Source of the DNA: Macrostomum lignano
Taxonomy: Eukaryota
NCBI GenBank assembly: GCA_002269645.1
Contig: NIVC01000027.1
Location: forward strand, 941,600-1,005,599
Reading direction: 5' to 3'
Length of the DNA stretch: 64,000 nucleotides
The position numbers and the translations under genes were made by a program. The notes under the pieces are model-generated. The model did no database searches. It saw only the letters and a program-made list of their open reading frames with translations, and was not told the DNA's origin. This document shows, piece by piece, positions 15,640-48,818 of the stretch (positions are counted from its first letter, which is position 1; the number at the start of each line of letters is the position of its first letter).

Positions 15640-15692
<53 letters not shown>

Positions 15693-21829: not shown

Positions 21830-22700
21830 TCTGGGATCTGGGATTTGGGATCTGAGATCTGAGATTTAGGACCTGGGATTTGGGATCTGAGATCTGGGAT
21901 TTAGGACCTGGGATTTGGGATATGAGAACTGAGATTTAGAATCTGGGATTTGGGATCTGAGATCTGGGATTTGGGATCTTTGAAATATTAGATTTATAAC
22001 CTGTGATTTGAAATCTGAGATCTGGGACCAGGGATTTGGGATATGAGATCTGAGATTTAGGACCTGTGATATGGGATCTGAGATCTGGGACCTGGGACTT
22101 GGGATCTGAGATATGAGATTTAGGACCTGGGATTTGGGATCTGAGATCTCGGATTTGGGATCTTTGGAATATTAGATTTATAACCTGTGATTTGAAATCT
22201 GAGATCTGGGACCAGGGATTTGGGATATGAAATCTGAGATTTAGGACCTGTGATATGGGATCTGAGATCTGGGACCTGGGACTTGGGATCTGAGATCTGA
22301 GATTTAGGACCTGGGATTTGGGATATGAGATCTGGGATTCGGGATCTGGGATTTGGGATCTGAGATCTGAGATCTTGGACTTGGAATCTAGGATCTGGGA
22401 TCTTGGAGTTGGAATCAAAGATCTGGGATTTTAGATTTGGAATCAAGGATCTCGGATCTTGGATTTAGAATCTAGAATCTGGGATTTAGGATCTGGGATC
22501 TGGAATCTAGGATCTGGGATCTTGGATTTGGAATCTAGGATCTGGGACTTGGGATTTGGAATCTAGGATCTGGGACTTGGGATTTGGGATCTAGGATCTG
22601 GAATCTTGGATTTGAGATCTAGGATCGGGGATTTAAGATCGGGGATTTGGGACTTGAGATTTGGGACCTGGGATTTTGGATTTGGGATCTGGGATCTGTG
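21830..22700. repeat. Degenerate heptamer array (GGGATCT/GGGATTT/GAGATCT) with an internal ~180-bp duplication
   Basis: 7-nt periodicity; the block near 21950-22110 recurs near 22130-22290. Confidence 0.9.
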
Positions 22701-22841
22701 ATATCTACTTCTTGGACCAAGTGGGGTCATGCGATAATAATCAAATTGCTGCCAACCAGGCCACTGTTCTAACCAAGCTGAAAATAAAAAAATCAATTAA
22801 AAACGAGAAAAAAGCAAAACACAAAAAGGTACGTCAGAAGG

Positions 22842-25695
22842 TCACAGAGAGCTGCTCTCCCTGCTAATGTCGTCATACTGGGGCGGGTTGGCCCGGGAGC
22901 CGGACGGGGCGCTCACGATGGCCACCGTGGTGTCTCCGCCGTAGCCTGACAATTTTCGGCAAAAAAATTTCACAGCCAATGTTCCATTAAAATACTTTTA
23001 GTAGAGGTTAAGCATTTTATGTAATAATTAGTGTAATAACACTTTTATAACCTACCTTGGCGCTTAGAGTTGGCTTGATTGAAGTCCGAGAGCCCTTCAA
23101 GATTCTCTTTTGCGGGCTGAAAATGGAAGAAATTCGGCTACAGATTAATGAAATTGTCTTTTTTTAAAATTTGAATATCCACTTTAATGTTGAAATTATT
23201 AGAGATCTACTTTAGAGAACTAAGAGAAGAAACATGAAAAGGTAGTCATGCAGCTAAGATCGCGCAAAAGTAGGGATGGGAGATGCTAAATAGTAAAATT
23301 TACACTGACAGACAGACAGAAGTCAACTCGCTAAAAGACTTGAAAAATCAGTTTACTAAAATTTCTCGCGTTCATTTCTTGTGCATTACGAGCGCATTGC
23401 TTGAAATTTCACTGCCCCAAAAGTTACATATAGAAAAGTTTCAGGTACGTGTCCGAATATAGACTGTCCGAAGATTTGAGTGTCCAAAGTGTCCGAAGAT
23501 GGAGTATCCAGAGATTGATATTGTTCGAAGATGGATAGTGTCCGAAGATTGATAGTGTCTGGAGATTGATAGAGTCCAAAGATTGATAGTGTCCGAAGAT
23601 TGATAGTGTCCGAAGATGGAGTGTCCAAATATTAGAAGCGTCCAAATATTGAAAGTGTTCGAAGTATCCGAAGATTGATAGTGCACGGAGATTGATAGTG
23701 TCCGAAGATTGATAGTGTCCGAAGATTGATAGTGTCCGAAGATTGATAGTGTCTGGAGATTGATAGTGTCCGAAGATTGATAGTGTCCGAAGATTGATAT
23801 TTGATAGTGTCCGAAGATTGATAGTGTCTGGAGATTGATAGTGTCCAAAGATTGATAGTGTCCGAAGACTGATAGTGTCCGAAGACTGATAGTGTCCGAA
23901 GATTGATAGTGTCCAAAGATTGATAGTGTCCGAAGATTGATAGTGTCCGAAGATTGATAGTGTCCGAAGACTGATAGTGTCCGAAGATTGATAGTGTCCA
24001 AAGATTGATAGTGTCCGAAGATTGATAGTGTCCAAAGATTGATAGTGTCCGAAGACTGATAGTGTCCAAAGATTGATAGTGTCCGAAGATGGAGTGTCCA
24101 AATATTAGAAGCGTCCAAAGATTGAAAGTGTCCGAAGTATTCGAAGATTGATAGTGTCCGAAGATTGATAGTTCCGAAGATCCGAAAAAAGATGGAATAT
24201 CTGAAGATTAATAGTATCCGAAGATGAAGCTTGCAAATGCAGCATTTGTATTGGAAGATTAGGTGTCCAAAAATTCATGTTTGAGCTTGCAAAATCTGTC
24301 AACACAGACGTGCCCAAGTATGTCCAATTACGCAACGGCTGCAAACCAATTTTGACCAGGTGAACACACGTAAGAGACGAATGCAAAACTGACACCATAC
24401 AATAGGCCATTGATGAAAAAAAGAATCTATTAAACGTAAAACATCGCAATTGGCACATATTACAATTAATCAATAAATAAAATTTATAACAGCATCAAGT
24501 ACGTACGTCAAATAACTACTTTACATGACTTACCCGAAACTGGCGTAGCTAAAATATTTGAAGCATGGAATAAATATGAACAACTGAATCCAGCAAGGAA
24601 GCGCATTATTCTACTAACTAAATAATAATTAAGTAGCATCTGTCGAAAACCAGTGATAATACGCGCAAGTTTCAGTATATTCGATGCAGAAAAAAATGTT
24701 AGCGTTAGAAATCACACCGCAGATGGATCTAGAATTCGGGTTCTGGGATTTGAGATTTAAGATCAGGTTTCTGGGATTTCGGATCCAGAATTTATTATCT
24801 GGAAACTGGGATTTAAGATCCAGAATTTGGGATCTGGGATCTAGAATTTGGGATATAGGATCTGAGATTTTGGATCTAAAATTAGGACTCTTGGATTTGG
24901 GATCTAGAATTTGGGATTTGGGATTTAGGATCTAAGATTTAGGTTATGTGATCTGGAATTTGTATATGGGATATAGGAGCTGGAATCTAGGATATAGGGT
25001 TTGGGATCAAGGATCTGGGATCAAGGATTTGGGATCAAGGATCTGGGATCAAGGATTTGGATCAATGATCTGGGATCAAGGATCTGGGATCAAGGATCGG
25101 GGATCTGGGATATGGGATCTAGAATATGGGATCTGGGATTGGAGATTTATAATCAAATAACCTCACAAATAAGTCTGTGACAAGGTCATGAAAGAAATAA
25201 TACCGAGTCAGGAGGAGTTTTTGAAAAGCAAGCCATGCTTAAATTAACAAAAAAAACAAGCTCACCAGGTGCGCCCGGCCCTCTTTCACTTCTTCGTCGT
25301 GTCGTCGATGACCGCGACGTCGACCGCGCCGTTTCGGGCAGCAGCCGGAGGCGCCGTCAGCGCCGTCATCCTCGCCAAGTGCCGCCGCGGCGTCCGCCTC
25401 CTCAGCCTCTTCGTCGTCTCGCGGGCTGAAGTCGAAATCGTTGTTGCCGCCGGAGCTTCTGGAGACGGCGTTGCGGCCAGCGACTGCCGCTGCAGCAGCA
25501 TGGTCGCTTGAGCAGTTGCCGCCCGCGCTGCTGCCGCCGCTGATGAGGCGGCCGGACCTGGCACCGAGCCGATGGGGCTGAAGGTGGTCGATTTCCACGA
25601 ATTCACGGTCCTGCGGAGAGGTGGTGGGCTGGCTGGCTGACACAGACAGAAAGACAGACAGACAGACAGATAGACAGACAGACAGACAGGCAGAC

Positions 25696-25748
<53 letters not shown>

Positions 25749-25751
25749 CTA

Positions 25752-25788
<37 letters not shown>

Positions 25789-25791
25789 CTA

Positions 25792-25877
<86 letters not shown>

Positions 25878-25879
25878 TC

Positions 25880-25912
<33 letters not shown>

Positions 25913-25915
25913 CTA

Positions 25916-26008
<93 letters not shown>

Positions 26009-29000
26009 GGCACACAGACAGATACTAAGACAGACAGACAGACAGACAAACAGACAGGCACCAACCGTAGTCCGCTCCAAGCAGGTGAGCAGGTGATGGT
26101 GCTGCAGCTCGAACACGTCCGTTTCGTCCGGCAGCTCCAGCTGTCCGCCTTGGCCGTCAGCATCGGATGAGGCGGCAGCGGCGGCCTGCAGCAGCTCTGC
26201 GTGGGCGCGGCGGCGCTCCTCCGCGCGCTTCTTGCTGCTGATAAACGCGGCGCCGGAGGCATTTTTGGCCATTTTGATTCGCGCCAAGCGAGCCTTCTGC
26301 AGTGGCGGGGGGGGGGGGGGTTGAACAGACTCGGGGAGTGACTCGCCAACACTTGCTCACAGAGGGTGTACAGCGGCACAGGACTTTCTAATCGTTAGAC
26401 ATGTACACTCTCTGTACCTTGGGGTTCCCAAATGAGTGTAAGATATATCTCCAGAATGCGAGAATTCTCTTACCTTCTGAGCTTTCCGCTTATCCGCTCG
26501 CTGATTCTGATGGTAAATTCTTGAGAAGCTGCTCACTATGACCGGGACTGGCAGGGCTATGACCAGAACGCCAGATAATGAGCAGATGCCGCCAACGATT
26601 TTGCCTACGATGGTCATTGGGACCATATCGCCGTACCTGCGGGCGGCGGGAGAATGCAAATTACTGCGGATGAAGGGGGCGGATGGCTGATGAAGGGGGC
26701 GAATAGATGATGAAGGGGCGGATAGATGATGAAGGGGCGAATAGATGATGAAGGGGGCGAATAGAAGATGAAGGGGGCGAATAGATGATGAAGGGGGCGA
26801 ATAGATGATGAAGGGGCGAATAGATGATGAAGGGGCGAATAGATGATGAAGGGGCGAATAGATGATGAAGGGGGCGAATAGATGATGAAGGGGGCGAATA
26901 GATGATGAAGGGGGCAGATGGCTGATGAAGGGGCGGGTGGCTGATGAAGGGGCGGGTGGCTGAGGAAGGGGGAAGATGGCTGATGAAGGGGCCGATAGAC
27001 GATGAAGAGGGCGGATAGATGATGAAGGGGGCGGATAGATGATAAAGGGGCCGATAGACGATGAAGAGGGCAGATAGATGATGAAGGGGGCGGATAGACG
27101 ATGAAGAGGGCAGATAGATGATGAAGGGGGCGGATAGACGATGAAGAGGGCAGATAGATGATGAAGGGGCGGATAGATGATGAAGGGGGCGGATAGATGA
27201 TGAAGGGGCGGATGATCGGTGGCAGGGGGTAGAAGGCTGAAAAGCACACCTAAAATCCTGCAATTATGAAGAACTACATTTTAAAAATAGTATTGTTGAT
27301 GATAAAATATTTTGAGTGACAGTTGACCCTACCCGAGTGCAAGTTGCCCCGCAAAATTCATACTCTTAGATAACATCATTTTAGCGCGGATTCCCCAATC
27401 AGCCTCTCTCTATGCACACACATATCAATCCATAAATTTCAGCCATTCTCAAATCCCTCGCCAGTTTACAACATCGGAAGCAGAGCTCCGACTCGGAGCC
27501 GTAAAACTGGGAGAAATAGAGACACAAAATCGATGCCAGAAGATATTTTCAACGGGCCCGGAGCTTGGCCTGAGTGCAGCGCTACAGAGTGGATAGGATG
27601 CTTTGAGACTGCTCATCAAGCATTTTTATCTCCCAGGCTAGCTCGAATCATCCTCTCCCCCACTCCAGCTCCCAGAGAAAATCGTCGGCATTGATTTATT
27701 GACAATTTTTAACTTTGCTTGGCCAGCCAGTCAGTAAAACTAGGTCAAGATACAAAACACGCCAGCTACTGAAGCCACGTGTACTTAACTGGTCATCAAA
27801 AAAGTGCGCTATAGGCTACATAAGCAGGCTAAGCCGCTGTGTTAAATCTCTATGGACTGAGCGCTGACCAAGGGTCGCGTACACGAAGCTTGGAAGTGAA
27901 GCCTGAAAGACCGACAGCAATAAATACGCTCGTAGAGGGTGAAAGAGAGGCAAATGGAAACAAGACTGTTTACACAGAGGGGACCGCAGGGAAGGCATGC
28001 GAAAGGCGGGGCGGTGAGGGCGCAGACGCAGGGAGGGAGTGTAACAGTGTAAACTGGGATACAAAAGACGAGACGGAGATAGGGAAGAGGCAGAGAGGGA
28101 GAGTGGAGACAGGCAGAGAGAGGGAGATGAACAATGGACAACAGATGGACAACAGCACAACGAAACGAGCAGCAGAGTGTGGGAAGAAATGGTGAGTGTG
28201 GGAAGAAACGGGGAGTGTGGGAAGAAACGGTGAGTGTGGGAAGAAACGGGGAGTGTGGGAAGAAACGGTGAGTGTGGGAAGAAACGGGGAGTGTGGGAAG
28301 AAACGGGGAGTGTGGGAAGAAACGGTGAGTGTGGGAAGAAACGGTGAGTTTGGGAAGAAACGGGGAGTGTGGGAAGAAACGGGGAGTGTGGGGAGAAATG
28401 GGGGGGAGAGTGTGGAGGGAAACGGGAGGAGTGTGGAGAGAAACGGGGAGTGTGGGAAGAAACGGGGAGTGTGGGAAGAAACGGTGAGTGTGGGAAGAAA
28501 CGGTGAGTTTGGGAAGAAACGGGGAGTGTGGGAAGAAACGGGGAGTGTGGGGAGAAATGGGGGGGGGAGAGTGTGGAGGGAAACGGGAGGAGTGTGGAGA
28601 GAAACGGAAGGGTGTGAGAGTGACACTGAGACAGAATCAGAAAAACATCGGGATGAAGAGGCAGGGCAGAGGAGCGCAGAGCGAACGAGCTCAGACAAGA
28701 GAAGAGAAAAGCTTGGCCATCGAAGCGGAATTCGGGCAGTAATCGCGCAGATAAGAATAATTAAAAGCCAGCTGAGCTCGCACTGCAGTTTGACCACACA
28801 GCTGCCCACAGACAAATAAGACACTTTAATCAAGCTAATGGGTTTAATAACTGAGTCAGAAAGCGGCCAGGACTGGGACTAAATAACCCCCCCCCCGTTG
28901 AGCAAACCTACTAATTTATCGGCTCCCTATAGATAAAAAGAAATTTCTGCCGATATCAAAGAGAGACTTTAAAAGCAACGAAAGCAGGCAGACGGGCAAG

Positions 29001-32000
29001 TCTGGAGAGGTAAAAGTACAGCTGGTTTGCCTCAGTGTGGCAAAAAGAATTCTATTTGATATCAAAGTACACTATCTGTATACTGTATCAGTACAGAGGT
29101 AGAACCAGTCTACTGCCCATGCATCTGGGCTGGCTGTAGCAACTGTAAATAAACTGAGCCTGCAGTTTGAAGAGCTTGGAAAGTCAGTAGCTTAGCTATT
29201 TATAGGGTCCGACAATTTGTGTAGTATGATTGTCAATAACTTGATAATTTCTCTGTAGTTTGATTGTCAATAACTTCTGACACTTTCTCTGTAGTTTGAT
29301 TGTCAATAACTTCTGACACTTTCTCTGTAGTTTGATTGTCAATAACTTCTGACAATTTCTCTGTAGTTTGATTGTCAATAACTTCTGACAATTTCTCTGT
29401 AGTTTGATTGTCAATAACTTCTGACAATTTCTCTGTAGTTTGATTGTCAATAACTTCTGACGCTTTCTGTAGTATGATTGCCAATAACTTCTGACAATTT
29501 CTGTAGTATGATTGTCAATAACTTCTGACGCTTTCTGTAGTTTGATTGTCAATAACTTCTGACGCTTTCTGTAGTATGATTGCCAATAACTTCTGACAAT
29601 TTCTGTAGTATGATTGTCAATAACTTCTGACGCTTTCTGTAGTTTGATTGTCAATAACTTCTGACGCTTTCTGTAGTATGATTGCCAATAACTTCTGACA
29701 ATTTCTGTAGTATGATTGTCAATAACTTCTGACGCTTTCTGTAGTTTGATTGTCAATAACTTCTGACGCTTTCTGTAGTATGATTGCCAATAACTTCTGA
29801 CAATTTCTGTAGTATGATTGTCAATAACTTCTGACGCTTTCTGTAGTTTGATTGTCAATAAATTCTGACACTTTCTCTGTAGTTTGATTGTCAATAAATT
29901 CTGACACTTTCTGTAGTATGATTGCCAATAACTTCTGACGCTTTCTGTAGTTTGATTGTCAATAAATTCTGACACTTTCTGTAGTATGATTGCCAATAAC
30001 TTCTGACGCTTTCTGTAGTTTGATTGTCAATAAATTCTGATAATTTCTGTAGTATGATTGTCAATAAAGTCTGACACTTTCTGTAGTTTAATATTGTCAA
30101 AAAGTCTGACAGCCACAAGTGATAGAACCATATTCAGGCTGTCTGATAAAAGATAGGCATCACAGAGGGAAACTGTTAGGTTGGACAGGTAAATGCAGAA
30201 AAGAAAAAAGAAAAAACTGCGTTCATTTGCAGCCGCCCAGTAAAGGACCGAGCCAGTAATCCCCCATTCCGCTATGCTACTATGCCAGTCCAGCACTAGA
30301 CCCAGCAGCAGCAGCAGTAGTTGACGTTACGCTGAAGAACTCCTGAAGAAATGCGCAGGCAAAATGCCACCCAAGCCTGCGAATCCCCAAGGCAAACTGG
30401 TTGCTATGGCGAATGTCCCACGGCGAGGCTGACGGGTGGGCTGCTGGCGGATTGCTGCGTATGAATGCCTTCTTGTAGGATTTTTTATCCCTTTCTGACT
30501 GATACACAAATGGGGTCAAAACTTTTTCGCAAGGATAGATTAGCAATCCACTATATCTTCTGTAGCATAGATTAGCAATCCACTGCATCCTCAGTAGCAT
30601 AGATTAGCAATCCACTACATCCTCAGTAGCATAGATTAGCAATCCACTACATCCTCAGTAGCATAGATTAGCAATCCACTAACTAAATCCTCAGTAGCAT
30701 AGATTAGCAATCCACTATATCCTCAGCAGCATAGATTAGCAATCCACTGCATCCTCAGCAGCATAGATTAGCAATCCACTGCATCCTCAGTAGCATAGAT
30801 TAGCAATCCACTGCATCCTCAGTAGCATAGATTAGCAATCCACTACATCCTCAGCAGCATAGATTAGAAATCCACTACATCCTCAGTAGCATAGATTAGC
30901 AATCCACTACATCCTTAGAAGGATAGATTAGCAATCCACTACATCCTTAGCAGCATAGATTAGCAATCCACTACATCCTTAGAAGGATAGATTAGCAATC
31001 CACTACATCCTTAGAAGGATAGATTAGCAATCCACTACATCCTTAGAAGGATAGATTAGCAATCCACTACATTCTCAGTAGCATAGATTAGCAATCCACT
31101 ACATCCTTAGAAGGATAGATTAGCAATCCACTGCATCCTCAGTAGCATAGATTAGCAATCCACTACATCCTTAGAAGGATAGATTAGCAATCCACTACAT
31201 CCTTAGAAGGATAGATTAGCAATCCACTACATCCTTAGAAGGATAGATTAGCAATCCACTACATCCTTAGAAGGATAGATTAGCAATCCACTACATCCTA
31301 AGAAGGATAGATTAGCAATCCAGTATATCCTCAGTAGCATAGATTAGCAATCCACTACATCCTCAGTAGCATAGATTAGCAATCCACTATATCCTCAGCA
31401 GCATAGATTAGCAATCCACTATATCCTCAGCAGCATAGATTAGCAATCCACTACATCCTCAGTAGCATAGATTAGCAATCCACTACATCCTCAGTAGCAT
31501 AGATTAGCAATCCACTACATCCTCAGTAGCATAGATTAGCAATCCACTATATCCTCAGTAGCATAGATTAGCAATCCAGTATATCCTCAGCAGCATAGAT
31601 TAGCAATCCAATCCAATTAGAGTCACAAAAGGAACCGGAAACCAAAGTTTCAATTGAAGCGTGCAAACACGGACAAAACTGTTTGGGTTTATTGGCAAAG
31701 AAATGAACTGTAATAATAGTGCGACATTTACCACTAATGACTTAGCTGAGCCAACAGCCCACGCGCTATGCACACAGTTGGCGAGTGCACAGTGCTTATG
31801 GCAGTGGGCGCTGACCAGCACTGCCTCTCATTCAGCTGTTGCCTGCCGGGCGGAACAGCCGGATTGGACTTGCACTTTTTCTGCTAGGTTAAATCCTAGC
31901 GCATTGTGCCCGACTAATTGCGAAAGTGAAATGAATGAAAGGTAAAAAAAGAAATGCAGTTCACCTAAGCTTAAAGGCTAATAGATGATAATACCCATTG

Positions 32001-32250
32001 CTGCACTAGGAGGGCCTACTTTACAAACTAGGCAGGGCTTAAGCTCGAGACAGCCTCTCCGTAAAATGATTCCCTCTAATGGATCTTGCTAACTGGGTAG
32101 CCGAAGAAGCTAATGAACATTGTTGCTTTCAATTTTGCCTGGATTGCTTTTTTGGCCAGAATTCCAGAAATTCCGCCACGAAATTTGCTGCGGAGTTTCA
32201 CGTTTTCAAAAATACTGCTTCCTACAGTTTAACACTGATTGGGTAGGGCG

Positions 32251-32298
<48 letters not shown>

Positions 32299-34544
32299 GT
32301 CAGTCAGTCAGTCAGTCAGTCAGTCAGTCAGTCAGTCAGTCAGTCAGTCAGTCAGTCAGTCAGTCAGTCAGTCAGTCAGTCAGTCAGTCAGTCAGTCAGT
32401 CAGTCAGTCAGTCAGTCAGTCAGTCAGTCAGTCAGTCAGTCAGTCAGTCAGTCAGTCAGTCAGTCCCCAGCTGAGCAGGATTAATTCACGCCAGGGCGGC
32501 AGAAGCAATCCGTGCATCCTGCATAAGAGAGACGGACAGGGAGAGGAAAGCGCATTGGGCATCGCTGAGAGCGGATAACCTGAGCAGCAATGGCATCAAA
32601 GCAGAGCAAGGCAGCTCACACTTTCCATATCCCCTCTTCACTCACCGTCAGCCCCCACACAGCTCGTATCGATCAAGATGGGCCACCCATCCCCAGCAGC
32701 AGCCCCTCTCTGGCCCTCCCGGATGCGCCACGCCACGTCCCCCACACCCACTCGTCCTTAACTGCGCCGGCCGGTGTGGAGAGGCCAAAAAGGTGAGAGG
32801 AGAGAAGAGCGGGATCAGATGAGCGAGCTGAGATAGCCGGCGAGAGAAATATGAGGGGGCCAGCAGATTAAAATGTGATCCATCCGCCTCTCCGCAGCAC
32901 TCGGGCGAGCTCATAAATCAGCAAAGCTTAAGCTGATTTTCTAGCGGGTAGGGGATTTGATCTAAAAAATTGGGGACTGCTCAAGGGAGCTGATGCTTCT
33001 TTATCTCTCTCTCTCTGCTCCCGACCCACCTTGCCCTTGAGAGAGTGCTCTAACTCACTCAACGCCTCGTGTTTCGTCTCTTACTCTCTCTCTCCCTCTC
33101 TCTCTGCTTTTGTCGCATCAATCCGAAGCTTGGGGATTAATCAGGGCGCTATCTGAGCTCCTGTCTACATCGAAAAACATGATCCCCCGCTGTCTGAGTG
33201 TGAGTGCGTGTATGTTGTCAAAAAGGCTCAGCACTGGCGACAGACACATTGGAAATCGGGTTCTGATTGAAATTCTGGAAAATCAGTATTTTTTTCTAAC
33301 GACAGATTCAATTTCTCGCATTTCGGACGGGTTTCAAAATTGAGGAGACAAGAGCGCTTCTGATCTGAAATGCATCCTGCACTGAGCGGTGCAAAAGCCA
33401 ATAGCGTGTGTCACACTTGCATCTGTGAGACTCACCCAAGCGTTGTCATGGTAACGATTGTATACCAAAACGCAGCCGGAATTGACACAAATGTAGTCTT
33501 CGGCTGGTTCTTCTCGGCGTAGTACATGATAGTGGCGAATATGATGACAGCCATGGTCATTGAGAATAGCAGGAAGCCCAGCTCAGACACGCAGGACTTC
33601 AACGTGTAGCCCAGAATTCTTAAACCCATCGAGTGCCGAGAGAATTTAAAAATACGAAACACTCGGAACACTCGCAGCGTAACGAACGCGCCGCTCAGGT
33701 CTTTGTTATCCGGCATGAACAGGCCGATGTAATACGGCAGGATGGCCACAATGTCAATGACGCTCATCACGGCCCGCATATGTTTCAACCGGTAGGGCGC
33801 AGCGTAGAACCTCGCACCGTACTCGACAGTGAAGATTAGGACGCAGGCGGTGTCCAAGCAGAAGAATGCCTGATTAAATTTGTCACCGCAAGCCGGGTTA
33901 GTTAGGGTGCCAGGCACAATGCCGCAGGGAATGGTCTCCAGTACGTTAGCCAGCACCGACAGTGCTATGAAGAATCCTGTCACGTAGTAAATCACTAGCG
34001 CTGTAGTTGAAGACTGCGGATTTTCGAACGCGCACCACAGCTTCTCTCGCATGGTAGTGTTTGGCATCTTGTTCTCCGTATCGGAGTCTTTGTCGTCCAT
34101 TAGTCGCTCGTTGTTCTCGCGCTTCTTATCGCGATACTCCTCGTAGCAGCAGTCGCCCATGATGTCCGGCATGATGCCGAAGAACGCCAGCTCTTCGTCG
34201 TAGGCCGTGATGCACTCGTGCTTCGGGCAGTGCAGCTTGCCAGTGCGGTAGTAGGCCAGGATGTGACGGAACAGGTCCGGGTCTCGGTCAAAGAAGTACT
34301 GCTTGCTGTCATCGTCGTAGAAGTACTCCTTCTCGTCGCTGCCAAGCAGAGTGTCCGGATATTTTTCCAGTGTGTTGCGCCATGTGACGAATTTTCGGCC
34401 GGACACGCTGATGATCAGCTTCTCGTCCGACTTGCCGCAGTCGCGACCGCGCACCGGCGGAGGCGGCATCGGGCCCTGGGCTACCGGCACCCAGCCGATG
34501 GCCGCTGCTCGGGCGAATGGCAGCCAAGCGGCCACGGCTGCCAT
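22842..34544 (-). CDS. Shal: Voltage-gated K+ channel Kv4 (Shal/KCND), 670 aa, 6 coding exons
   Basis: Exons 34544-33436, 26636-26474, 26296-26066, 25610-25266, 23116-23056 and 22945-22842 are all GT-AG and phase-consistent. Motifs: [19 protein letters not shown]-terminus, T1 with H-x5-C-x20-CC, S4 [19 protein letters not shown]|YGD pore split by the conserved intron, PVPV, and [12 protein letters not shown]|DREF. Confidence 0.97.
23455..24180. repeat. 17-bp minisatellite (GTGTCCGAAGATTGATA) in a Kv4 intron
   Basis: Tandem units; 17-aa period in the ORF track. Confidence 0.96.
24740..25145. repeat. Heptamer array of the same GGGATCT/GGGATTT type as 21830-22700
   Basis: 7-nt periodicity and the same unit variants. 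Confidence 0.88.
25641..26058. repeat. Interrupted (GACA)n microsatellite filling Kv4 intron 3
   Basis: It spans nearly the entire intron 25611-26065, with CACTAA, AAAC, GATA and GGCA interruptions. Confidence 0.97.
26360..26430 (-). mobile_element. Fragment of the same tRNA-derived SINE family, in Kv4 intron 2
   Basis: GTGTACAGCGGC...ATCGTTAGACATGTACACT...CCTTGGGG matches 15998-16058. Confidence 0.55.
26665..27215. repeat. 19-20-bp minisatellite (GAATAGATGATGAAGGGGGC) next to the Kv4 intron-1 acceptor
   Basis: Tandem units ending ~25 nt from the CAG acceptor at 26637-26639. Confidence 0.95.
28185..28610. repeat. 19-bp minisatellite (GAGTGTGGGAAGAAACGGG/T)
   Basis: Tandem purine-rich units. 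Confidence 0.93.
29215..30092. repeat. 34-36-bp minisatellite (CTGTAGTTTGATTGTCAATAACTTCTGACACTTTCT)
   Basis: Tandem units with alternating variants. Confidence 0.96.
30525..31612. repeat. 32-bp minisatellite (GCATAGATTAGCAATCCACTACATCCTCAGTA), ~34 copies
   Basis: Tandem units; a central block carries the CCTTAGAAGGATAG variant. Confidence 0.97.
32250..32464. repeat. Compound (GACA)n(GTCA)n microsatellite
   Basis: Read directly. Confidence 0.97.
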
Positions 34545-34574
34545 GTTGGCTGGTCAGGGATCGGGTCTTACTAT

Positions 34575-34790
34575 GCCTTCGATAGCGTCTGGTTTCGGAG
34601 CGTTTAAACCTTCGATAGCGTCAGGTTTCGGAGCTCGTCTACGCCTTCGATAGCGTCAAGTTTTGGAGCGTTTACACCTTCGATAGCGTCAGGTTTCGGA
34701 GCGTTTAAACCTTCGATAGCGTCAAGTTTTGGAGCGTTTACACCTTCGACAGCGTCAGGTTTCGGAGCGTTTACGCCTTTGATAGCGTTG
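34575..34790. repeat. 32-33-bp minisatellite (TTCGATAGCGTCAGGTTTCGGAGCGTTTAAACC), ~7 copies, just upstream of the Kv4 ATG
   Basis: Tandem units. A CAG acceptor 5 nt before the ATG suggests they lie in a 5'UTR intron. Confidence 0.9.
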
Positions 34791-37401
34791 GACTTCTGCC
34801 ACGTTTAATGCACAATCGAAGTATTAGTTCGCTTAGATACATGAACAAGCAATATTAACAAACTAATTTCTGTAGCATAATGTTATAGCATTTAGCAAGT
34901 ACGAGGAATTACTAATTGTGAAGTCGGTTTCCGCGGCTTGAATTTATACAAAAGCGGTTAGACAGTGAATCCGCATGCACAGATTGTCATTGGCTGATCA
35001 ATAAGAAGCCAGTCTGCCTGCAATCCCCCCATCTGCTACTGGGCATGAATGTCATCTCTAAAGCATCGTCTGCACAAAACGGTGGCCACTTGGTAACCTG
35101 AATACGCAACTGCACTAATACATTGCTTATGTATTTAAGGTACAAGTGACATTGAAAAGTTCAGGACTCGAAGACCTATGTAACCATACCACTTCAGAAT
35201 AGACTGGCTAGAAGACCTATGTAACCATACCACTTCAGACTAGACTGGCATACATTTGGAAGTACATTATGACATTTATGCAGCTTGTGAATTTGGAATA
35301 AAATTTTATAATCAGATAAAATGGTGCTTAAAAATATCTATTTGAAATTATTAGCATTGATGTCTCTTTAACTGATCAAGATATAATCGAAAATTTTTAA
35401 TTGAACTATCTAGTGATATAGAAAACTTTCATACTGAGACTTGTTAAGAAACAATAAATAAAGTTTATCATGCAACATAACATTTTTTATTTCAATATTT
35501 TTTTCTAAAACCAAGAAAATTGGGTTCCAACTTTTAACTCAAATCTATTGCAGACACATGGGCTTAACTTTAAACAAAACCTTATAAACCTAGTACTTAT
35601 CTAGACTTATATTTGATATTGTTTTCTTTAAATTTAAAGCACTAAAAATTAAACTACCTTAGCTTCAACTTTTCTGCAGACTAATTAGGCTCTTTTCTCT
35701 TTCCCTCCTCCTTAAGAAGGGATATCTCTATCTTGTGCAGTGCACTAATTGGCTAGGCTTTGCTGCTATCTGCTTTTGTTTGTTATTTATTATGCTTTCT
35801 GACTGCCCTCTCAATTATATTGTCTCACTCTGCCTTCTAAAGGTTGCCTTCATTAAATTATTTAATCATAATATTAGTCAATATAGCTTGTAATATGAGG
35901 ATTGTTTGGAAAGTCTGTGATCAAACATGCATATCTTTTTCGAGTCACTGCTTTGTCTTGATACTTTATACCATAGACAAATATCATACCCTGATTGTTT
36001 TAAAGCAATAGTGGTCTTGTCTGTCTATCTGACTGACTGACTGACTGACTGACTGACTGACTGAATGAATGAATTTTGTTTAATTAACTTTCAAGATTAA
36101 CCCTTATTTTGACATTTTCAATAGGTTACTATATTTATTTATAAAAACATTGCATCCAACTAATAATTAAATTGTAGAAATATTTTAGTAAAATAATAAT
36201 GCAAATCTATAAACCTTCATCAGAATAATGTGTATGCTAACAACTAAACATTTTTTACTTGCAAATTGTGCAGATTAAAGTTTTAGAATACACACCAGAA
36301 AAGTTTAAAATGCATAGCATCTTCCAGAATATATCCTAATATACATGTATACTCAGCAAATCAAAATTTTTACCTTAAAAGCAAGATGAAAATTTACTCA
36401 CTTACTGAAACAATTTTTCATTCATAATTTAACATTCACTTAAGTTGTATAACTAAGCCATTGCAAAGAAGAGAAAGTGGATTGAATAATAATAGACAAT
36501 AGTTATAAAATCATAACAGTTTATTTTTTGTACAATATGCAAATAAAATTGCATGCCTAACAATGTGTATGGGATCAGTCTATGGTGCATCCCCCAAGAT
36601 GAGGCAATACAGAAAGTCCTAGGGAAGCTACTGCCAAGCATGTTCAATGGCATGATATAGCTCCAAAACATTCTATAATAGATTCTCTTTTTTAATTCTA
36701 TATTTTAGGAAGTCCCAAATTGCTTAAAAAGAGTCTTGTGTCTAGGGTGGGAAGGCTAGCGCAATGTGCAGTTGTAGCTATTTTTATAGTTGACTAATAG
36801 CATTGGCTCGGTGTGGCAGCTTCTATTTTGTACCATTAAATAGACCCAAGCTACCTCCAAATGGCAATAAGCTTTATATATGCCATAAGTTGCATTATTT
36901 GCGATAAAGGTACTTGCCATTTTTTAGCATATATCAGCATATATCCCAGCATACATGACACAATAGAAAATTTTCAGCTTAGATCTATGGCATATATGCA
37001 TACATGATAGGATCAAATAAAGTGCCTTATAAATATATAAAATAGGCCTAGCCTATATGCAACACTATTATCATGCATTCATGGAACAAAGGAATAAAAA
37101 AATTTTAAACTTTGTGCTCTACAAAACTAGGTTTTTTTATATTTAGCAGATAAAAGTATTTAAAGTACTTTTTTATATCTGTCTTTTCTCAGTGCACATT
37201 GAAAAAGTTTGTAGTTTTTTAAGTTTCTTACTTTGCATGAATAATAAATTCAAGAATGAAAAGATGTACAAAGTTGAAAACTTTCTTGGATTGCTAGGAT
37301 TTGTCCCAGAAATTCTGGGATTGATGAGATTTTAGTCCTAGTATACAAACATAATCCTATACTTCCCCTCCCACTAGACCTAGTGTATACTAATATACAA
37401 T

Positions 37402-39281
37402 TAGGGATGCTAAAATATTAGACTTGCCCAAAACCAGGATCCCAGTATTCAATACTAGAATTTTGCCAATACTAGTTTTGAATACAGGCAGGTATTCAAT
37501 AGCTTTTTTTCATATTAATTGGCTTTCAAATTTCAAAAATTCAAATTTTATTGTATTTTTCCTATTTTTTTCTTATTGCCTATCTTTTGAATGTATTATA
37601 TTATATAAATCATTTATTTGAATTGTCCTGACTTTTAAATCCAATCAATTTGTGAAATAATAGTAATTGTTTGTACAGTAATTATCATTTTAGTAGCATT
37701 CTTACTAGCCTTATCTTATTCATTGCCTTATCATATTCACCTTAATACATGTACAGCTATATTGTTTGTTAAATAGATCACAAAAATCATGCATCTTCTA
37801 CTGATAGTTTCAATTCTGCCTGTTTATCCTACTAAGCTTCTTGCCCATTTTAACCCTTTCCCATAATCAGGCATCCTGTCTCTTTACACCCTATCAGGCC
37901 TATTGCCGGTTCCTGGACACTTCGTCATCTTACTACTTCGTCATCCACTCATATTTCTAGACACTTTGTCATCTTACTACTTCGTCATCTACAATACTAT
38001 TTTGGACACATCGTCATCTACTCCCTGGACACTTTGTCATCCACTTTGTCTGAAAAACTTATTGAATGAGAAGCTAAATGTAACTTTGTCAGCTAAGTTG
38101 TATTGAGTAGTCATAAATATAGGTGGCTACACTGAGGATTAACTAACTGATTAACTAACTGATAATTAATGTGGATTAACTACGACAGGGGAAGAGCTAG
38201 AGAAGATAACGCAATCAGTACAAAATTGAATTCTACTTGCGGTTTGAATACGATACAAAATCTTGTAATCATACAGTGAAACAAAAATAATAATGAATTG
38301 TAAATTTGCATACCTGAATAGCAAAATTAAATACAACTTAAAAAATAAATAATAATAAATACTAAAAAATACACTATTCATAAACATAATTAAATCTACA
38401 TTGTTACAACTCTACACATGGTTGTGGAAGCAAAGCTATAATAAAATTACAATCAACACTTGTACACATACAGCGTGCATTTAGATGCCAATTATAGCGA
38501 GAAGTTGAATCCCTAAACGTGTATTTAATCCTATATTTTACATACTATTGATTGAGAAACAATTTACATGTATAAAAAACAATCGAATAACAATTTTACA
38601 GCTTTGCGGAATCTTGGGATGACGAAGTGTCCTCAAAATTTGGTCACTTCGTCATCTAGATTTCTAACAATTTTTTTGTATGACGAAGTGTCCAAAAACC
38701 ATGGTCACTTTGTCATCTGGATGATGAACTGGTAAGATGACGAAGTGTCCAGGAACCCTATTGCCAACCTCCTTCATTAGGCATTCTGCCTTCCTCCTAC
38801 CCCCATTCCTTATTAAACATCCCACTCTCTATGCTAGCATACCCCATTAACTATTAGAATTCCCTATTAGCTATTGAAATTCTCAATTAATATGCCCATT
38901 TCCCATGCAACTCTAATCTACTATGTAGCCCTTCTTCTCTCTCTCCATTGGATTGATTAGATAGTGTTTTGCCACTTGGACACTTATGGCTTATGCTACT
39001 AGGAGTATCCCCAGGCTTACTCCTTATAGTAGCATAAATTGGTATTAGTATTGACTGATACAGAATTTAAAAAATGAAAAATCTAAAAAGCCTCAGCTGA
39101 AGCATTTGTTAATTTCTAGGAAAATGCAATTAAAACAAAAACCTACAAAATTAAAAATTAAAGTCCATTTTAGACATATATTGCACCAATATTGGACCCT
39201 AATACTGGTATTGGTAATATTGAAAAAATGGCCCAATACTGGTATTTTTTCTAAACTAGGATCTCAGTGTTAGCATCTCTA
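37402..39281. mobile_element. Non-autonomous hAT-like element, 1,880 bp
   Basis: Termini TAGGGATGCTAA / TTAGCATCTCTA (11/12 inverted match). Perfect 8-bp TSD TATACAAT at 37394-37401 and 39282-39289. CAATACT/AGTATT subterminal repeats. Confidence 0.85.
37908..38757. mobile_element. Nested non-autonomous TIR element (GG termini, 8-bp TSD; MULE/Merlin-like, superfamily uncertain)
   Basis: Perfect 26-bp TIR GGTTCCTGGACACTTCGTCATCTTAC. TSD CTATTGCC at 37900-37907 and 38758-38765. Repeated GACACTTCGTCATC subterminal motifs. Confidence 0.88.
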
Positions 39282-40272
39282 TATACAATCTAAACTATAG
39301 CTTAGAAGTCTAGAAAATGGAACTTTTGACTATTGCCAAGTATATTTTAGGTCTTGCAATTATAGTTTCAAACTTGTAACATCAAATATGAGTTAAAGGG
39401 AAGCAAAAGTAAGAGGCTGACTTAAGTTAATAAAGTTAAAAATTGAATAACTTGTATTTTATTTAAAAAATCTTTTCAGTTTAGTTTTGCCAGATAAAAC
39501 TAAAAAAGTAGCTTATTTATAGTCAGCATAGCAATAGTTATTTATGTAACTCAGCACTCTCAACAGAAAAAACTTTACCTCAAATCCCCAGCTCTAGCCA
39601 CACTTTTAAACTCTGACTTTTTATAGTATAGTATATAATTATTTATCATTACAATTTTAGCAAAGAAAATTAAAATTTACAAAAGATTGTTACATTAAAT
39701 AATTTTTTAAATTAAATTTGACTAATAGTAATACCGATGAATTAATACAATGCCAATTTAAATATACCACAAATCTTACTAAAACAAATTCTTAGAACTA
39801 AGTAACATTATGTTAGTTGATTTTTAATCAATGACAAATGTCTGTCTTACTCTTAAAAAACAAATTTTATTTTTTACTTAATTAACTTTTGTAAGTTGTT
39901 AATCCTAAGTAAGTAACTAGGCTTTAATTTGTTTTTTATAAATATGATTCTCAGAAATAAAGTAGTTTTCACACATTGAAATACCAAATAGCCAACACCT
40001 ACAGGCTTTACAGCCTACAAACCACAAGAGTCGATCAGATAAAGCACGATAAATAAGATATATTCGTTTTTGGTTTCTTGGAAAATTTAGGGTCTCCCTA
40101 AAACACGCCCCGCACCGCCCCGAACCGCTACACATTATAACATTTTTTGTCAATGCAGTATTTGATTGCAAAGAAAACTATTTGTTGTAAGAGTAATGGA
40201 ATAAATATCTTTAATTATTATTATAAATATTGTCATAATTTTTTATATTCTCGTTTTCATTATTAAATTATA

Positions 40273-40923
40273 GGGTGCGTTCGAGTGACTTAAAATGACT
40301 TAAACTGCCATTTTAACGTCCTTAGTAAAACAAATGTTAAGCAGACTAAATGTAAAAATAATCTAGGTAAATGATAGTCAAATTACAATTAAGAATTAAT
40401 TCAATTTCTAAAACCGGTCTAAGATTAAAAAAACGTCGCCTATACTTCTTCCAACTCAACCTGAACGCCTAGGCACCGTTTTAACTTCGCTCGCAATTAC
40501 CACATTTAATCGTAATTGAATATTTTGTATTCTTCACCTTTGTTCTATCATTTGCTTTCACGTCCTTTTGCTCAGTTCGCTGCCCGTCATTATAGTCTTT
40601 GAATAATTGCTTAGTACTAATATTGTTTATTTATTAATTGTTATTACGTAGTAGTTTATTTGGACTTGGAATATAGTCACTATTTCAGCTTGGTTCTTAT
40701 TCTTCAATATAGTATCTGAGTGAACTTCATGTTATGGTTTTGTCTTTCTAGTATAGGCGACGTTTTTTTAATCTTAGACCGGATTTAGAAATTGAATTAA
40801 TTCTTAATTGTAATTTGACTATCATTTACCTAGATTATTTTTACATTTAGTCTGCTTAACATTTGTTTTACTAAGGACGTTAAAATGGCAGTTTAAGTCA
40901 TTTTAAGTCACTCGAACGCACCC
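40273..40923. mobile_element. MITE with 173-bp TIRs
   Basis: 40273-40445 is the reverse complement of 40751-40923, with one mismatch seen. Ends are GGGTGCGTTCG, flanked by ATA on both sides. Confidence 0.92.
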
Positions 40924-41720
40924 ATATTATTATTATTTTATTAATATTATTATTAATATCACTTATTATTCACCGAATTTTATATTTCAAATTAAAGAAA
41001 CTAAATTTAATAAAAACTTTAAAGCTTAACAGAAAACGCATTTTTTAGTGTCTTCAGTTATAGTCCAATTTGTTTTAATGTGTAGCGCTGCAGGGCGGTG
41101 CGGGGCGTGTTTTAGGGAGACCCGAAAATTTATTGTACAAACTTTTTAAAAACCCCGTAAAACAAATTGTAAACGCCAAAAACAGCTTAGCAGCTTACTT
41201 CAATCCTTTTATCAAAAGCAAAGAAATAAAATTCAGGGCTTAATACTCTTTTCTTGAATACTGACTATCAATTTTTTCTACTTATTGCATAAAATGTGTT
41301 CTACTATTTTCAACTTCTAAAATTCGCATATATAATTTTGTTTAATACGTTGGACAAAAGCACAAAACAAGTTCGACTTAAATATTTAAAAGTCACTCAC
41401 CCAGCCAGTCGAAACGGATAGCAGTTTTCTAAATTTGGCTGAGCATTTATTTTTATTGCGCCTGCATGCATCTCCAGCTCAAACCACATGTTCAAGTAAC
41501 CGCATTTCCCAATGCATTGTGCGCATGCACTTTCTTACAGACATTATTGTGAAGCAAGCAGCTGAAGTATTCAAGTTTTCTGCTGGCTTCTTATTGCCAT
41601 AAGTTGTTGGTTCTATTCATGCTCGTGCCTTTTGCCAAACGACTCGGTCTTAAACATGTGATTTATTATTTCAATCTTCAGCGTAAACTTATGTTTTTTG
41701 CCAATTAATATCGATTAAAA

Positions 41721-42398
41721 ATGACCGAAAAGAAAAAACCGATCCTTACTGGACAGCAACGCCTAGTAAAAGATTTGCTCCGTTCAGGCGCAATCAGCCA
41801 TTCGAGCGCCGAGGAGGCAATGCTGGTAATTGACCGAGGCAATTTCTTCCCCCGCGATGCACTCTACGCGTACGCTGACTCACCACAAAGCATCGGCCAC
41901 GGGGCGACCATTTCGGCGCCGCACATGCACGCCATAGCGCTGAGCTGTCTGGCACCAAAACTGGTCCCCGGTGCCAAGGCGCTAGACATTGGTAGCGGCT
42001 CTGGCTACCTTACAGCTTGCATGGCTTACCTAGTCGGTCCGACAGGCAGAGTCATCGGCATCGACCATGTTGACGCTCTTGTCACGAAGGCTACCGCAAA
42101 TCTCCGCGGCTGCTCGGCCACTCAAGAACTCCTGGATTCTGGCGCAATCACCATGGCAACTGGCGACGGCCGGCGCGGCTTTCCAACCGAGCAACCATTC
42201 GACGCGATTCACGTGGGCGCCGCCGCCGAACAGTCGGTGCCGCCCGACCTGACAGATCAGCTGGCACCTGGTGGACGTCTGGTTTGTCCTGTGGGTCCGG
42301 CCGCTGGCCGGCAGACTCTTCTCCGACTGGACAGAGCGCTGGATGGCAGCCTCAGCCGGCGAGCCCTGATGGGAGTCACATTTGTACCTCTGGTTTGA
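41721..42398 (+). CDS. PCMT1: Protein-L-isoaspartate (D-aspartate) O-methyltransferase, intronless, 225 aa
   Basis: Motifs YADSPQSIGHGATISAPHMH, ALDIGSGSGY, GDGRRG, DAIHVGAAA, PGGRLVCPVG and LMGVTFVPL. AATAAA at ~42504. Confidence 0.95.
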   Translation: MTEKKKPILTGQQRLVKDLLRSGAISHSSAEEAMLVIDRGNFFPRDALYAYADSPQSIGHGATISAPHMHAIALSCLAPKLVPGAKALDIGSGSGYLTACMAYLVGPTGRVIGIDHVDALVTKATANLRGCSATQELLDSGAITMATGDGRRGFPTEQPFDAIHVGAAAEQSVPPDLTDQLAPGGRLVCPVGPAAGRQTLLRLDRALDGSLSRRALMGVTFVPLV

Positions 42399-43129
42399 CA
42401 TTTGTGCATCGCCTGATGATGTACATGTATTAGATGAACGTGTAAACACATCGAGCAACTCGCCACAAGTTATGCGCTTTTTCGAAACAAAATTGAAATT
42501 AAAATAAAACAGCAAATAATTAACCAACTGTTAATTGCAAAGAAGGCCAAATTCAAGCTACTCGTACAAGAGGTGTCATTAGAGATTACTGCCGAAGGTC
42601 TTCTAACTGGCGTATGCGAAATGCATCTGACTCTCTCACGTCACGACCCCTGTTCGCAGGCCACAGTCAGTAGGGGCTTGTGCGCGAAATTTGTCTAGTG
42701 GGTTGTCATGCAATTTCCACCCAAAGCACTGCAATTTATTGGGAAGTCAGGACGGCAGCACAACCTGTGCTCAAGCATGTTTGAAGTACAGTGTACGTGC
42801 GTGTCCTTATTATCCGCGCACTTTTATAATGTGCTCGGAGTCAGTGGAAATGGCAGAGTGCCTCATTGCTAGTTGTTTGACAATGTCACTAAGTTGATAC
42901 GGCCAGGTACTCACCATCGCATGCCTAAAGTTGATTAGTCTATGGAAAGAACTCAAGTGACTACAGAGAGAATATACAAACTATTATGAGCCAGTTTAAT
43001 ATTTAGGCATCGCGACAAATTACAAACCACGCCTTCAGAGTCGCATAATTAATATTGTTAAATTATTTTATTTTAACACCAGTCTACTTTAACCGTCGGA
43101 AAAGAAAAGTTGATTAACTAATTGTCGAA

Positions 43130-43368
43130 ATGACTCGAGGGCAGCTCGGCAGTTTCACTCAGCAAAAGTCATGCCGGCCAGCAATACTAAAGACGGCAGC
43201 TATCAAGCGCCAATGCCCAACCAGCCCTCCTGGCAGTTCGTCGGAGTCTGGCACGGCGACCACAGCGCACGGCACAGCAGCACCGTGCCTGCTGATGGCC
43301 CGAAGGCAACAACGTCAGCGCCTTGTTCAACAAGCTGGAGCAGCTGGAGGCAGCCCCACTACGACTAG

Positions 43369-43408
<40 letters not shown>

Positions 43409-43411
43409 TAG

Positions 43412-43452
<41 letters not shown>

Positions 43453-43455
43453 TAG

Positions 43456-43516
<61 letters not shown>

Positions 43517-44842
43517 GTCTGCCTGTCTGTCTGTCTGTCTATCTGTCTGTCTGTCTGTGTGTGTGTGTCTGTCTGTCTGTTTGTCATTATCTAAAGCTAA
43601 CCTGAATCTGCTCCACACGCAGATGTATTTTTGGTGGATGCGAAACTTCTCTACGAGGGCAAGTGCACAAAAAAGAGCAGAAATCAGCCCAGCAAAAGCC
43701 GTCGCCCGTGCAGCAGTCAGAGCTCACCGCCAACAATCTCTGCGCCGAAGGCACGACCACCCCCGCCGCTGCAGCCGCCAGCGATGCGGCGGGATTGAAT
43801 TCAACCTCCTCCTCGTTTGAGGACGCCAGTCAGGCGAGGAACTCGCACTACCGCGACCCTAGTCCTCTTCGCCCCGGCCCTCGCCACCGCATGCTGGCTG
43901 GACAATCCAGAAGCGACGATGACTATGATGACGAGGAGAGCGAGGAGACCAGGAAAGCACGAATGTCTTCGCTGGCTCTGAAGAAGCAGTTCATCTACTA
44001 TGAGGGCAAAATGAAAACTGTTCTGGTGCAGCTGTGGCCCGATGCGGTAGGGTTTTAATGCATTGATCGGCCTTAGTTTATTTCACGTACATGCACTTGT
44101 CTTCTTGACTTGCAACACATCTTCCTTTCTTCTATTGTCCGGTCCTGTCAAATGTTTACTTGTTTTCGTAAGGCTTGTCTTCCTAAATGTTTTCGTATTT
44201 TTTCTTGTCCGCTTTTCAGTTGCTTAATCTTACCTGACCGTACAACAGCTAAGTTTGTTCTGTGGTCGCTGGACTAATTAACTAGCACTTGACTAGCTTC
44301 CTAATTCCTTCAACTCAGATAAAACAGATGACAGGCAGCTCAAAGGATGAACATGTCTGAATCTCGCGCCATTCGGTGCTTGACTGGCTGACAATGTATT
44401 TTGTTGCTCTTGTTGCTGTGCAAAAAAATCAGGAATATGAGCGCCCAATTTATTGTTTTTCCTTAAACCAAGTCTTTATCCATGTCAGGTCACACGATCG
44501 ACCACCTGTCTCCCGCACCCTCAGAACCGAATTCCGTTGCACGAGCGGCACCGCCTTCAAGACCCGATGAAAAAACACTACGGCCGGCTTTCCCAGCGAG
44601 CTCGACTACTCAAAGAATTCGAGAACAACAAGCGCAAACAGCCGCGTGAGATTGTGGAAGTGCCGCTACTGCCGCGACGAATGCAGCAGGAGGCGAAGGT
44701 GCGACTAATGGCCTGGTACCAGCCTATCAGCCTGACCTTGGCTGAGCCAACCGGAGCTGCAACCACTGCTGCTGGCCCTGCCGCTGACGCCCAGGCCTCA
44801 GCAGAGCCTGTCAACTCAACAGATAATAAGCATACACGATGA
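43130..44842 (+). CDS. Uncharacterised low-complexity protein (~338 aa), predicted 3 exons
   Basis: Exons 43130-43368, 43623-44046 and 44489-44842. The junctions AG|gt...(GCTAAC branch)...cag|A and GCG|gtaggg...cag|GTC keep one open frame. No recognisable domain. Confidence 0.6.
43369..43584. repeat. Interrupted (TCTG)n microsatellite filling intron 1 of the orphan gene
   Basis: Begins at the GT donor; TCTTAGTG, TTTG, TCTA and CCTG interruptions. Confidence 0.96.
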
Positions 44843-48326: not shown

Positions 48327-48818
48327 AACACAAGCTCACACAAGCTCACACAAGCTTACACAAGCTCACACAAGCTCACACAAGCTCACACAAGCTCACA
48401 CAAGCTCACACAAGCTCACACAAGCTCACACAAGCTCACACAAGCTCACACAAGCTCACACAAGCTCACACAAGCTCACAAAAGCTCACAAAAGCTCACA
48501 AAAGCTCACAAAAGCTCACAAAAGCTCACAAAAGCTCACAAAAGCTCACACAAGCTCACACAAGCTCACACAAGCTCACACAAGCTCACACAAGCTCACA
48601 CACGCTCACACAATCTCACACAAGCTCACACAAGCTCACACAATCTCACGCAAGCTCACACAATCTCACACAAGCTCACGCAAGCTCACACAATCTCACA
48701 CAAGCTCACACAAGCTCACAAAAGCTCACACAAGCTCACACAAGCTCACAAGCTCACACAAGCTCACACAAGCTCACAAAAGCTCACACAAGCTCACAAA
48801 AGCTCACACAAGCTCAAG
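48327..48818. repeat. 10-bp minisatellite (CAAGCTCACA), ~49 copies
   Basis: Tandem units read directly. Confidence 0.98.

Follow-up and report, generated by a model that had tools for sequence, protein, structure and literature searches.

Conversion of variant repeats in human minisatellites was reportedly described by Jeffreys and colleagues. Transposon-borne microsatellites include mini-me elements in Diptera and microsatellite families in Lepidoptera. In yeast, gene conversion in micro- and minisatellites copies sequence while altering repeat number (Richard, Paques and colleagues, as cited in PMC8145212), and gene conversion between duplicated microsatellites is known from the inverted arms of Y-chromosome palindromes (Balaresque et al. 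2014, PMC4233959). Introner families are defined by at least four similar introns in unrelated genes, with low-complexity families filtered out (Gozashti et al. 2022, PMC9860276). Described here are two TCTG-repeat introns of Macrostomum lignano, one in a Kv4/Shal gene (array A) and one in an orphan gene (array B), within a stretch of 64,000 nucleotides (nt) referred to as the window (contig NIVC01000027.1, positions 941,600-1,005,599; the window end coincides with the contig end, from the range of locus L001). Both introns carry the same ordered haplotype of nine variant repeat units, which was probably transferred from the Kv4 array to the orphan array in a non-reciprocal event, either ectopic gene conversion or template switching, with only the repeat as template. 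The phenomenon was not found described for Macrostomum in literature searches.

The shared haplotype of arrays A and B

Coordinates are window positions, and lengths of products are in amino acids (aa).

22842-34544, minus strand: Kv4/Shal gene, six coding exons, 670 aa
34544-33435, 26635-26474, 26296-26066, 25610-25266, 23116-23056 and 22945-22842, minus strand: Kv4 coding exons of the six-exon model
25611-26065, minus strand: array A, Kv4 intron 3, 455 nt, phase 0, GT...AG
25655-25794, minus strand: shared block in A, 140 nt, putative donor state
32253-32465, plus strand: comparator array in Kv4 intron 1, (GACA)11(GTCA)42, TCTG-type on the sense strand of Kv4
43130-44842, plus strand: orphan gene BOX15_Mlig016714g2, three coding exons (43130-43368, 43623-44046 and 44525-44842), 326 aa
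43369-43622, plus strand: array B, orphan intron 1, 254 nt, GT donor fused to the first TCTG unit
43406-43557, plus strand: shared block in B, 152 nt, putative conversion tract
43558-43622, plus strand: native 3' remainder of B, (TG)5 (TCTG)3 TTTG followed by the unique tail TCATTATCTAAAGCTAACCTGAATCTGCTCCACACGCAG

Both arrays carried TCTG on the sense strand of their respective host gene and were called at period 4 by Tandem Repeats Finder (TRF; 104 copies in A, 55 copies in B). In the sense orientation, array A was interrupted (TCTG)n nearly throughout with four 'TCTT AGTR ...' modules, and read ...(TCTG)19, the shared block, then TCTT (TCTG)2 TGTCAGCC.... Array B read G (TCTG)9, the shared block, then (TG)5 (TCTG)3 TTTG TCATTATC.... 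The two blocks were resolved as follows.

A: TCTT AGTG (TCTG)2 TTTG (TCTG)5 TCTT AGTG (TCTG)2 TTTG (TCTG)8 TCTA (TCTG)2 CCTG (TCTG)3 TCTA (TCTG)4
B: TCTT AGTG (TCTG)2 TTTG (TCTG)6 TCTT AGTG (TCTG)2 TTTG (TCTG)10 TCTA (TCTG)2 CCTG (TCTG)3 TCTA (TCTG)4

The same nine variant units stood in the same order in both blocks, with 0 substitutions over 140 aligned nt, and the only differences were in the two longest pure runs (5 vs 6 and 8 vs 10 units; B +1 and +2). The 20-mer TCTTAGTGTCTGTCTGTTTG, for which 0 matches were expected from window shuffles, was matched exactly four times, twice in A and twice in B. Nine ordered variant units with identical short spacings were common to A and B, whereas no more than 5 were reached when the units of B were shuffled 20,000 times. 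Identity of the two blocks by chance is excluded. The comparator array at 32253-32465 carried none of the shared interruptions and was retained in a second genomic copy (L002 1-392, 96.7%). A first-pass annotation of the window had given the coordinates and strands of A and B, their unit-by-unit composition, their intronic position with TCTG in sense and the lack of these interruptions in the (GACA)n array near 32250; the unit breakdown and the gene models bear out this description. Its proposal of a shared origin followed by slippage is supported as well.

Similarity was confined to the arrays. When flanks of 2 kb on each side of A and B were compared, only chance-level high-scoring segment pairs were returned (E 0.28-0.99), with no homology. 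No target-site duplication (TSD) longer than the dinucleotide AG and no terminal inverted repeat (TIR; 7/30 and 12/30 matches) was found at A and B, and neither array was accompanied by poly(A) or a shared non-repeat flank. Because homology does not reach the flanks of the arrays, segmental duplication of an intron-bearing segment does not fit the data. The putative conversion tract in B spans at least 43406-43541 and at most ~43370-43557; its exact limits are masked by the pure TCTG runs on either side, hence the range.

Array B was placed in an intron by the annotated M. lignano protein P0121, which was 100% identical to the window product across the junction TTTR|CIFGG (43368/43623). For array A, the splice junction LERTT|DREF was backed by the paralogue protein P0123, Kv4 exons 3 and 4 being still joined across the array. 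The six-exon model gave products of 670, 670 and 669 aa in three genomic copies (the third has a 3-nt deletion in exon 3), equal to the annotated product lengths and coding-sequence ends, and therefore the RNA-guided annotation removes the whole array from 26065 to 25611. In the Kv4 gene called in L001, Shal-type, BTB_2, Ion_trans and DUF3399 domains were present. When Kv4 exon 1 and the C-terminal exons were used as queries in homologue searches, neither the 670-aa protein of the window nor its copies were recovered, only a paralogue cluster at 89% identity; exon 1 lay closest to M. lignano. Use of the last TCTTAG as an acceptor, which also gives exactly 670 aa, was considered; this sequence and seven other 670-aa guesses were absent from the protein collection, and the idea was dropped because the six-exon model with an ordinary acceptor explains the 670, 670 and 669 aa of all three copies.

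Several features of the arrays and their host genes were recorded alongside. Tracts of (TCTG)n are stop-free in all three sense frames and the TAG of TCTTAG is the only stop gained, so that long artefactual 'SVCL' open reading frames (ORFs) run through the arrays. From a reading of the sequence, each TCTG unit boundary presents a donor-like GTCTGT, and TCTTAG following a pyrimidine-rich tract resembles an acceptor. An exact look-up of the ORF comprising orphan exon 1, (TCTG)9 and TCTTAG gave no independent record. The tail of B contains CTAAC at 43597-43601, 22 nt from the acceptor, which is a putative branch site by consensus. No RNA family was matched by Rfam in array A or B. K_chan_RES (potassium channel RNA editing signal) matched only outside the arrays, at the start of Kv4 exon 2 in the pore region (79 bits, window 26528-26640, minus strand), and this match may reflect coding-sequence conservation only.

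Genomic copies and the age of the two introns

The M. lignano sequence was taken from Mlig_3_7, which was assembled from PacBio reads with Canu 1.4 and polished with Pilon using Bowtie2-mapped Illumina reads and RNA-seq reads (PMC5730564). Only ~64% of its bases were error-free by REAPR, and simple or tandem repeats make up 15% of the genome (PMC5730564). In the window, tandem repeats occupied 20% of bases, and ~40% of the Kv4 gene span. Many regions are present in several near-identical assembly copies because the sequenced line has extra large chromosomes (PMC5730564). The region holding the dehydrogenase, Kv4 and orphan genes was found in three such copies, on NIVC01000027.1, NIVC01001525.1 and NIVC01000028.1. 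The M. lignano sequence compared comprised the window and five loci (~190 kb), among them L001, which was fetched via the orphan protein and is 100% identical to window 33130-54842. Two further copies of the Kv4 intron, A' and A'', were located via the adjoining dehydrogenase gene (exact protein match of its three-exon model), and a second copy of the orphan intron was designated B'.

14585-16767 of the window, minus strand: dehydrogenase gene, three-exon model with an exact database match, counterparts on L004 and L005
L004 2334-2802: A', Kv4 intron, runs of 5, 7, 3 and 4 units and two extra modules, leading run (TCTG)10
L005 1951-2239: A'', Kv4 intron, runs of 5, 10, 2 and 2 units, leading run (TCTG)9
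L002 10240-10600 (NIVC01001525.1): B', orphan intron at the same site as B, also (TCTG)n

In each of the three copies the Kv4 intron contained the haplotype, with differences only in run lengths and module number (A itself has runs of 5, 8, 3 and 4 units behind its leading (TCTG)19). The interior of B' read (TCTG)7 TGTG (TCTG)17 TGTG TCCC TCTG TTTG (TCTG)6 TGTG (TCTG)4 TGTG (TCTG)18 TGTG (TCTG)23 TTTG TCATTATC, and thus contained TGTG, TCCC and TTTG interruptions only, with no TCTTAGTG, TCTA or CCTG. The unique flanks of B and B' differed at 3/400 and 11/398 nt, yet the haplotype was found in B and not in B'. Array B is a mosaic: its A-type patch is followed by (TG)5 (TCTG)3 TTTG TCATTATC, which matches the end of B' and not A. 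The tail and the TTTG-TCATTATC junction are common to B and B', TG- or TGTG-type interruption is the signature of the B lineage, and B'-type sequence is kept in B only outside the patch. The state was therefore found in every copy of the putative donor lineage and was lacking in the sister copy of the recipient, a non-reciprocal pattern, and the identical tract in B is surrounded by sequence that has no relation to the donor locus. B has short inner runs of 3 and 4 units, as do A and A', whereas those of A'' have 2 and 2; this is consistent with the copy in cis as donor.

Within the Kv4 lineage the arrays also contained extra degenerate modules (TCTT AGTA..., and TCTT AGTG (TCTG)8 ACTG TTTG), which indicate in-place evolution. 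Modules of the form 'TCTT AGTR (TCTG)2 TTTG (TCTG)n' numbered 4 in A, 6 in A' and 3 in A'', despite exons that were 99-100% identical, and the Kv4 intron array behaves like a minisatellite of higher-order units. Within the ~190 kb compared, the motif was found only in the copies of Kv4 intron 3 and in B, at two gene loci.

Neither intron is new. In the brachiopod Lingula anatina, the Shal gene is interrupted in phase 0 between the same two codons (LEKTT|DREF), by an intron of 1542 nt that lacks a TCTG array. The site is also occupied in both compared copies of Mlig020078, an older Kv4 paralogue of Macrostomum (at least two genomic copies; exon 1 ~80% identical at the nt level), where the introns are degenerate and TCTG-rich and contain five and three TCTTAG motifs, respectively. 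Presence in Lingula and in the older paralogue marks the Kv4 position as ancient, and the microsatellite has replaced the whole content of the ancient intron. Occurrence of TCTTAG in the old paralogue would place the history of the motif in the Kv4 lineage, although this evidence of ancestry is weakened by metagenome matches to a single module (below). The orphan intron likewise occupies the same site in B', where it lacks the haplotype.

Probable ectopic gene conversion and its alternatives

These observations are best accounted for by ectopic gene conversion, which the first-pass annotation had offered as the third of its possible mechanisms and which fits the mosaic structure of B and the comparison of copies. 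Both introns predate the transfer; each would by then have been filled by a sense-strand (TCTG)n microsatellite, and the interruption haplotype would have originated in the array of Kv4 intron 3. Repair of a break or of a stalled fork in B may then have used the non-allelic array A as template, 17.3 kb distant on the same chromosome and inverted relative to B, with the TCTG repeat as the sole homology. Synthesis-dependent strand annealing is the likely pathway. In this scheme, resection of B would expose a 3' end of pure TCTG, which would invade A and be extended by ~140-190 nt, the nine variant units of A included; once displaced, the extended strand would re-anneal via TCTG units on the other side. 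If the longest pure runs annealed out of register or slipped, the change from 5 to 6 and from 8 to 10 units would be accounted for. The outcome would be a non-crossover that left donor A unchanged, with gene order preserved and the native 3' end of B retained. A crossover between inverted arrays would invert the segment between them and split both genes. The intervening segment was not inverted: the order and orientation of the dehydrogenase, Kv4 and orphan genes are the same on NIVC01000027.1 and on NIVC01001525.1, which lacks the patch, as expected for a non-crossover. Observed directly are the ordered haplotype common to A and B, the mosaic make-up of B, the earlier existence of both introns and the occurrence of the haplotype in every Kv4 copy but not in B'; the pathway, the direction from A to B and the use of A in cis as donor copy are inferred.

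Several points weigh against this account. All of the evidence comes from one PacBio/Canu assembly polished by Pilon with multi-mapping short reads. Polarity rests on one sister copy (B') and on parsimony, and since the arrays evolve fast, loss of the patch from B' is conceivable. The motif count covers ~190 kb of M. lignano. The 24-mer TCTTAGTGTCTGTCTGTTTGTCTG was also found by a metagenome scan in eight unrelated contigs from the Joint Genome Institute (JGI) and GenBank, so that one module by itself is less distinctive than it might seem; the complete haplotype of nine units was not seen in those contigs.

L008-L015: metagenome contigs Ga0056108_*, Ga0056134_*, Ga0209780_*, Ga0209459_*, Ga0209259_* and JAAUYA010417691.1

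In six of the eight contigs (five loci) the 24-mer lay inside a conserved interspersed repeat of ~150-220 bp, in which it was followed by variable (TTTG)/(TCTG) units between conserved flanks; in the other two it occurred in other contexts. Similarity between this repeat and M. lignano was limited to ~33 low-complexity bases, and the flanks of the metagenome element were absent from the M. lignano sequence compared. No full nine-unit haplotype was seen outside M. lignano. Modules of the TCTTAG kind can thus be transposon-borne elsewhere.

The quality of the assembly bears directly on whether the patch is real. The true B might resemble B', with A-type bases introduced by Pilon from mis-mapped short reads of the three Kv4 arrays or by read correction; this is unlikely, and the repeat content and REAPR score reported for the assembly (PMC5730564) lend it what weight it has. 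The run lengths of B (9|2,6,2,10,2,3,4) differ from those of A (19|2,5,2,8,2,3,4), A' (10|..5..7..) and A'' (9|..5..10,2,2,2), and reads with A-type variants should find a better alignment on the three A copies than on an array resembling B', which together argue against an artefact. In addition, the mosaic boundaries are clean, within a 254-nt intron with unique flanks that is easily spanned by long reads. A real patch could still have another polarity or age, having passed from the orphan gene to the ancestor of the three Kv4 copies, or having entered B earlier and been lost from B' by deletion and re-expansion. The rapid turnover of microsatellites, the comparison with a single sister copy of B and the capacity of a single TCTTAGTG module to occur independently elsewhere speak for such histories, which are nonetheless improbable: at least two events are needed instead of one, the degenerate extra modules point to evolution in place in Kv4, TCTTAG modules are present in the old Kv4 paralogue as well, and B'-type sequence survives in B only outside the patch.

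The headline proposal of the first-pass annotation was a possible mobile intron made of microsatellite, introner-like or retroposed. On this reading, an introner-like DNA element or a retroposed microsatellite unit would have been inserted into both genes and created the introns. Two unrelated genes do have introns of near-identical sequence, each in sense orientation and adjoining its donor site, and the metagenome family with the same 24-mer within conserved flanks could also be cited for it. The reading is very unlikely, and creation of the introns by a mobile unit is already largely refuted. The Kv4 position is shared with the non-repeat intron of Lingula and with the old paralogue, the orphan intron exists without the haplotype in B', and similarity covers only an internal part of B (43406-43557 of 43369-43622). 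Nor is there any TSD, TIR, poly(A) or flank homology; the metagenome flanks are missing from M. lignano as compared, the motif occupies only two gene loci, and the arrays are low-complexity (TRF period 4), a class filtered out of introner families (PMC9860276). Convergence, in which selection for the same splicing elements (TCTTAG as decoy acceptor, TCTA/CCTG motifs) produced the pattern twice, is scarcely credible. The acceptor-like and donor-like readings given above and the recurrence of TCTTAG in all Kv4-lineage arrays agree with it, but a match of nine variants in both order and spacing, free of substitutions, does not, and none of the variants is present in B', which splices at the same annotated junction.

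A wider proposal is more doubtful: in the repeat-rich genome of M. lignano, same-motif arrays would act as portable homology through which unrelated introns exchange sequence routinely, with TCTG introns evolving in concert genome-wide. The TCTTAG module, kept in every Kv4-lineage array across the old duplication and possibly transposon-derived, might under this proposal persist through a splicing role as an acceptor-like decoy.

Neighbouring features and related systems

Other features of the region were noted independently of the arrays. No domain was found in the orphan protein by Pfam, and its homologues were found only in M. lignano. Between the Kv4 and orphan genes (window 41721-42398, plus strand), a 225-aa ORF carries a full PCMT domain (E 8e-64); it was absent from the called genes of the record and, by exact look-up, from the protein collection, and is probably an unannotated or differently spliced gene. 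An exact look-up of P0002 gave no match. Directly downstream of the orphan gene (window 45822-46142, plus strand) lies an ORF with Tc3/Tc1-type transposase helix-turn-helix domains. A 10-mer satellite, (ACACAAGCTC)n, at window 48328-48816 occupies a clearly longer stretch in L002, the second genomic copy (14753-15515). Related minisatellites of GGGATCT/GGGATTT 7-mers are present in two different 3' introns of Kv4 (21830-22702 and 24725-25140), another case of repeats of one family occupying separate introns of the region.

If the patch in B is real, it represents a clean natural ectopic conversion between non-paralogous loci in which a microsatellite is the only shared homology. Microsatellite interruption patterns would then be unsafe for marking a locus as identical by descent. 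Array-templated conversion could also mislead scans for introners or other 'similar introns' of unrelated genes, which supports the filtering of low-complexity families. Exchanges, and inversions from crossovers between inverted arrays, could add structural instability in repeat-rich genomes.

Transposon-borne microsatellites resemble A and B in that internal structure is common to different loci by descent, and differ in that no non-repeat flank is shared with the M. lignano arrays. Introners likewise place highly similar sequence in introns of unrelated genes, whereas the positions of A and B pre-exist, only two gene loci are involved, similarity is partial and low-complexity, and TSD and TIR are lacking. 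A further parallel is found in recombination-linked conversion of micro- and minisatellites, ectopic or allelic, where variant-repeat patches are copied and the number of pure repeats is changed, as between A and B; the yeast and human systems are experimental or allelic and have homologous flanks, whereas A and B represent a natural interlocus event in introns of unrelated genes. In the Y palindromes (PMC4233959), as here, transfer is non-reciprocal and intrachromosomal, between same-motif tetranucleotide arrays in inverted orientation, and multi-step changes break the stepwise mutation pattern. The palindromes differ in that long near-identical arms supply the homology; the flanks of A and B are unrelated, so that the array is the only homology available. 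The A/B pair is a modestly novel variant of a known process and not a new class of element.

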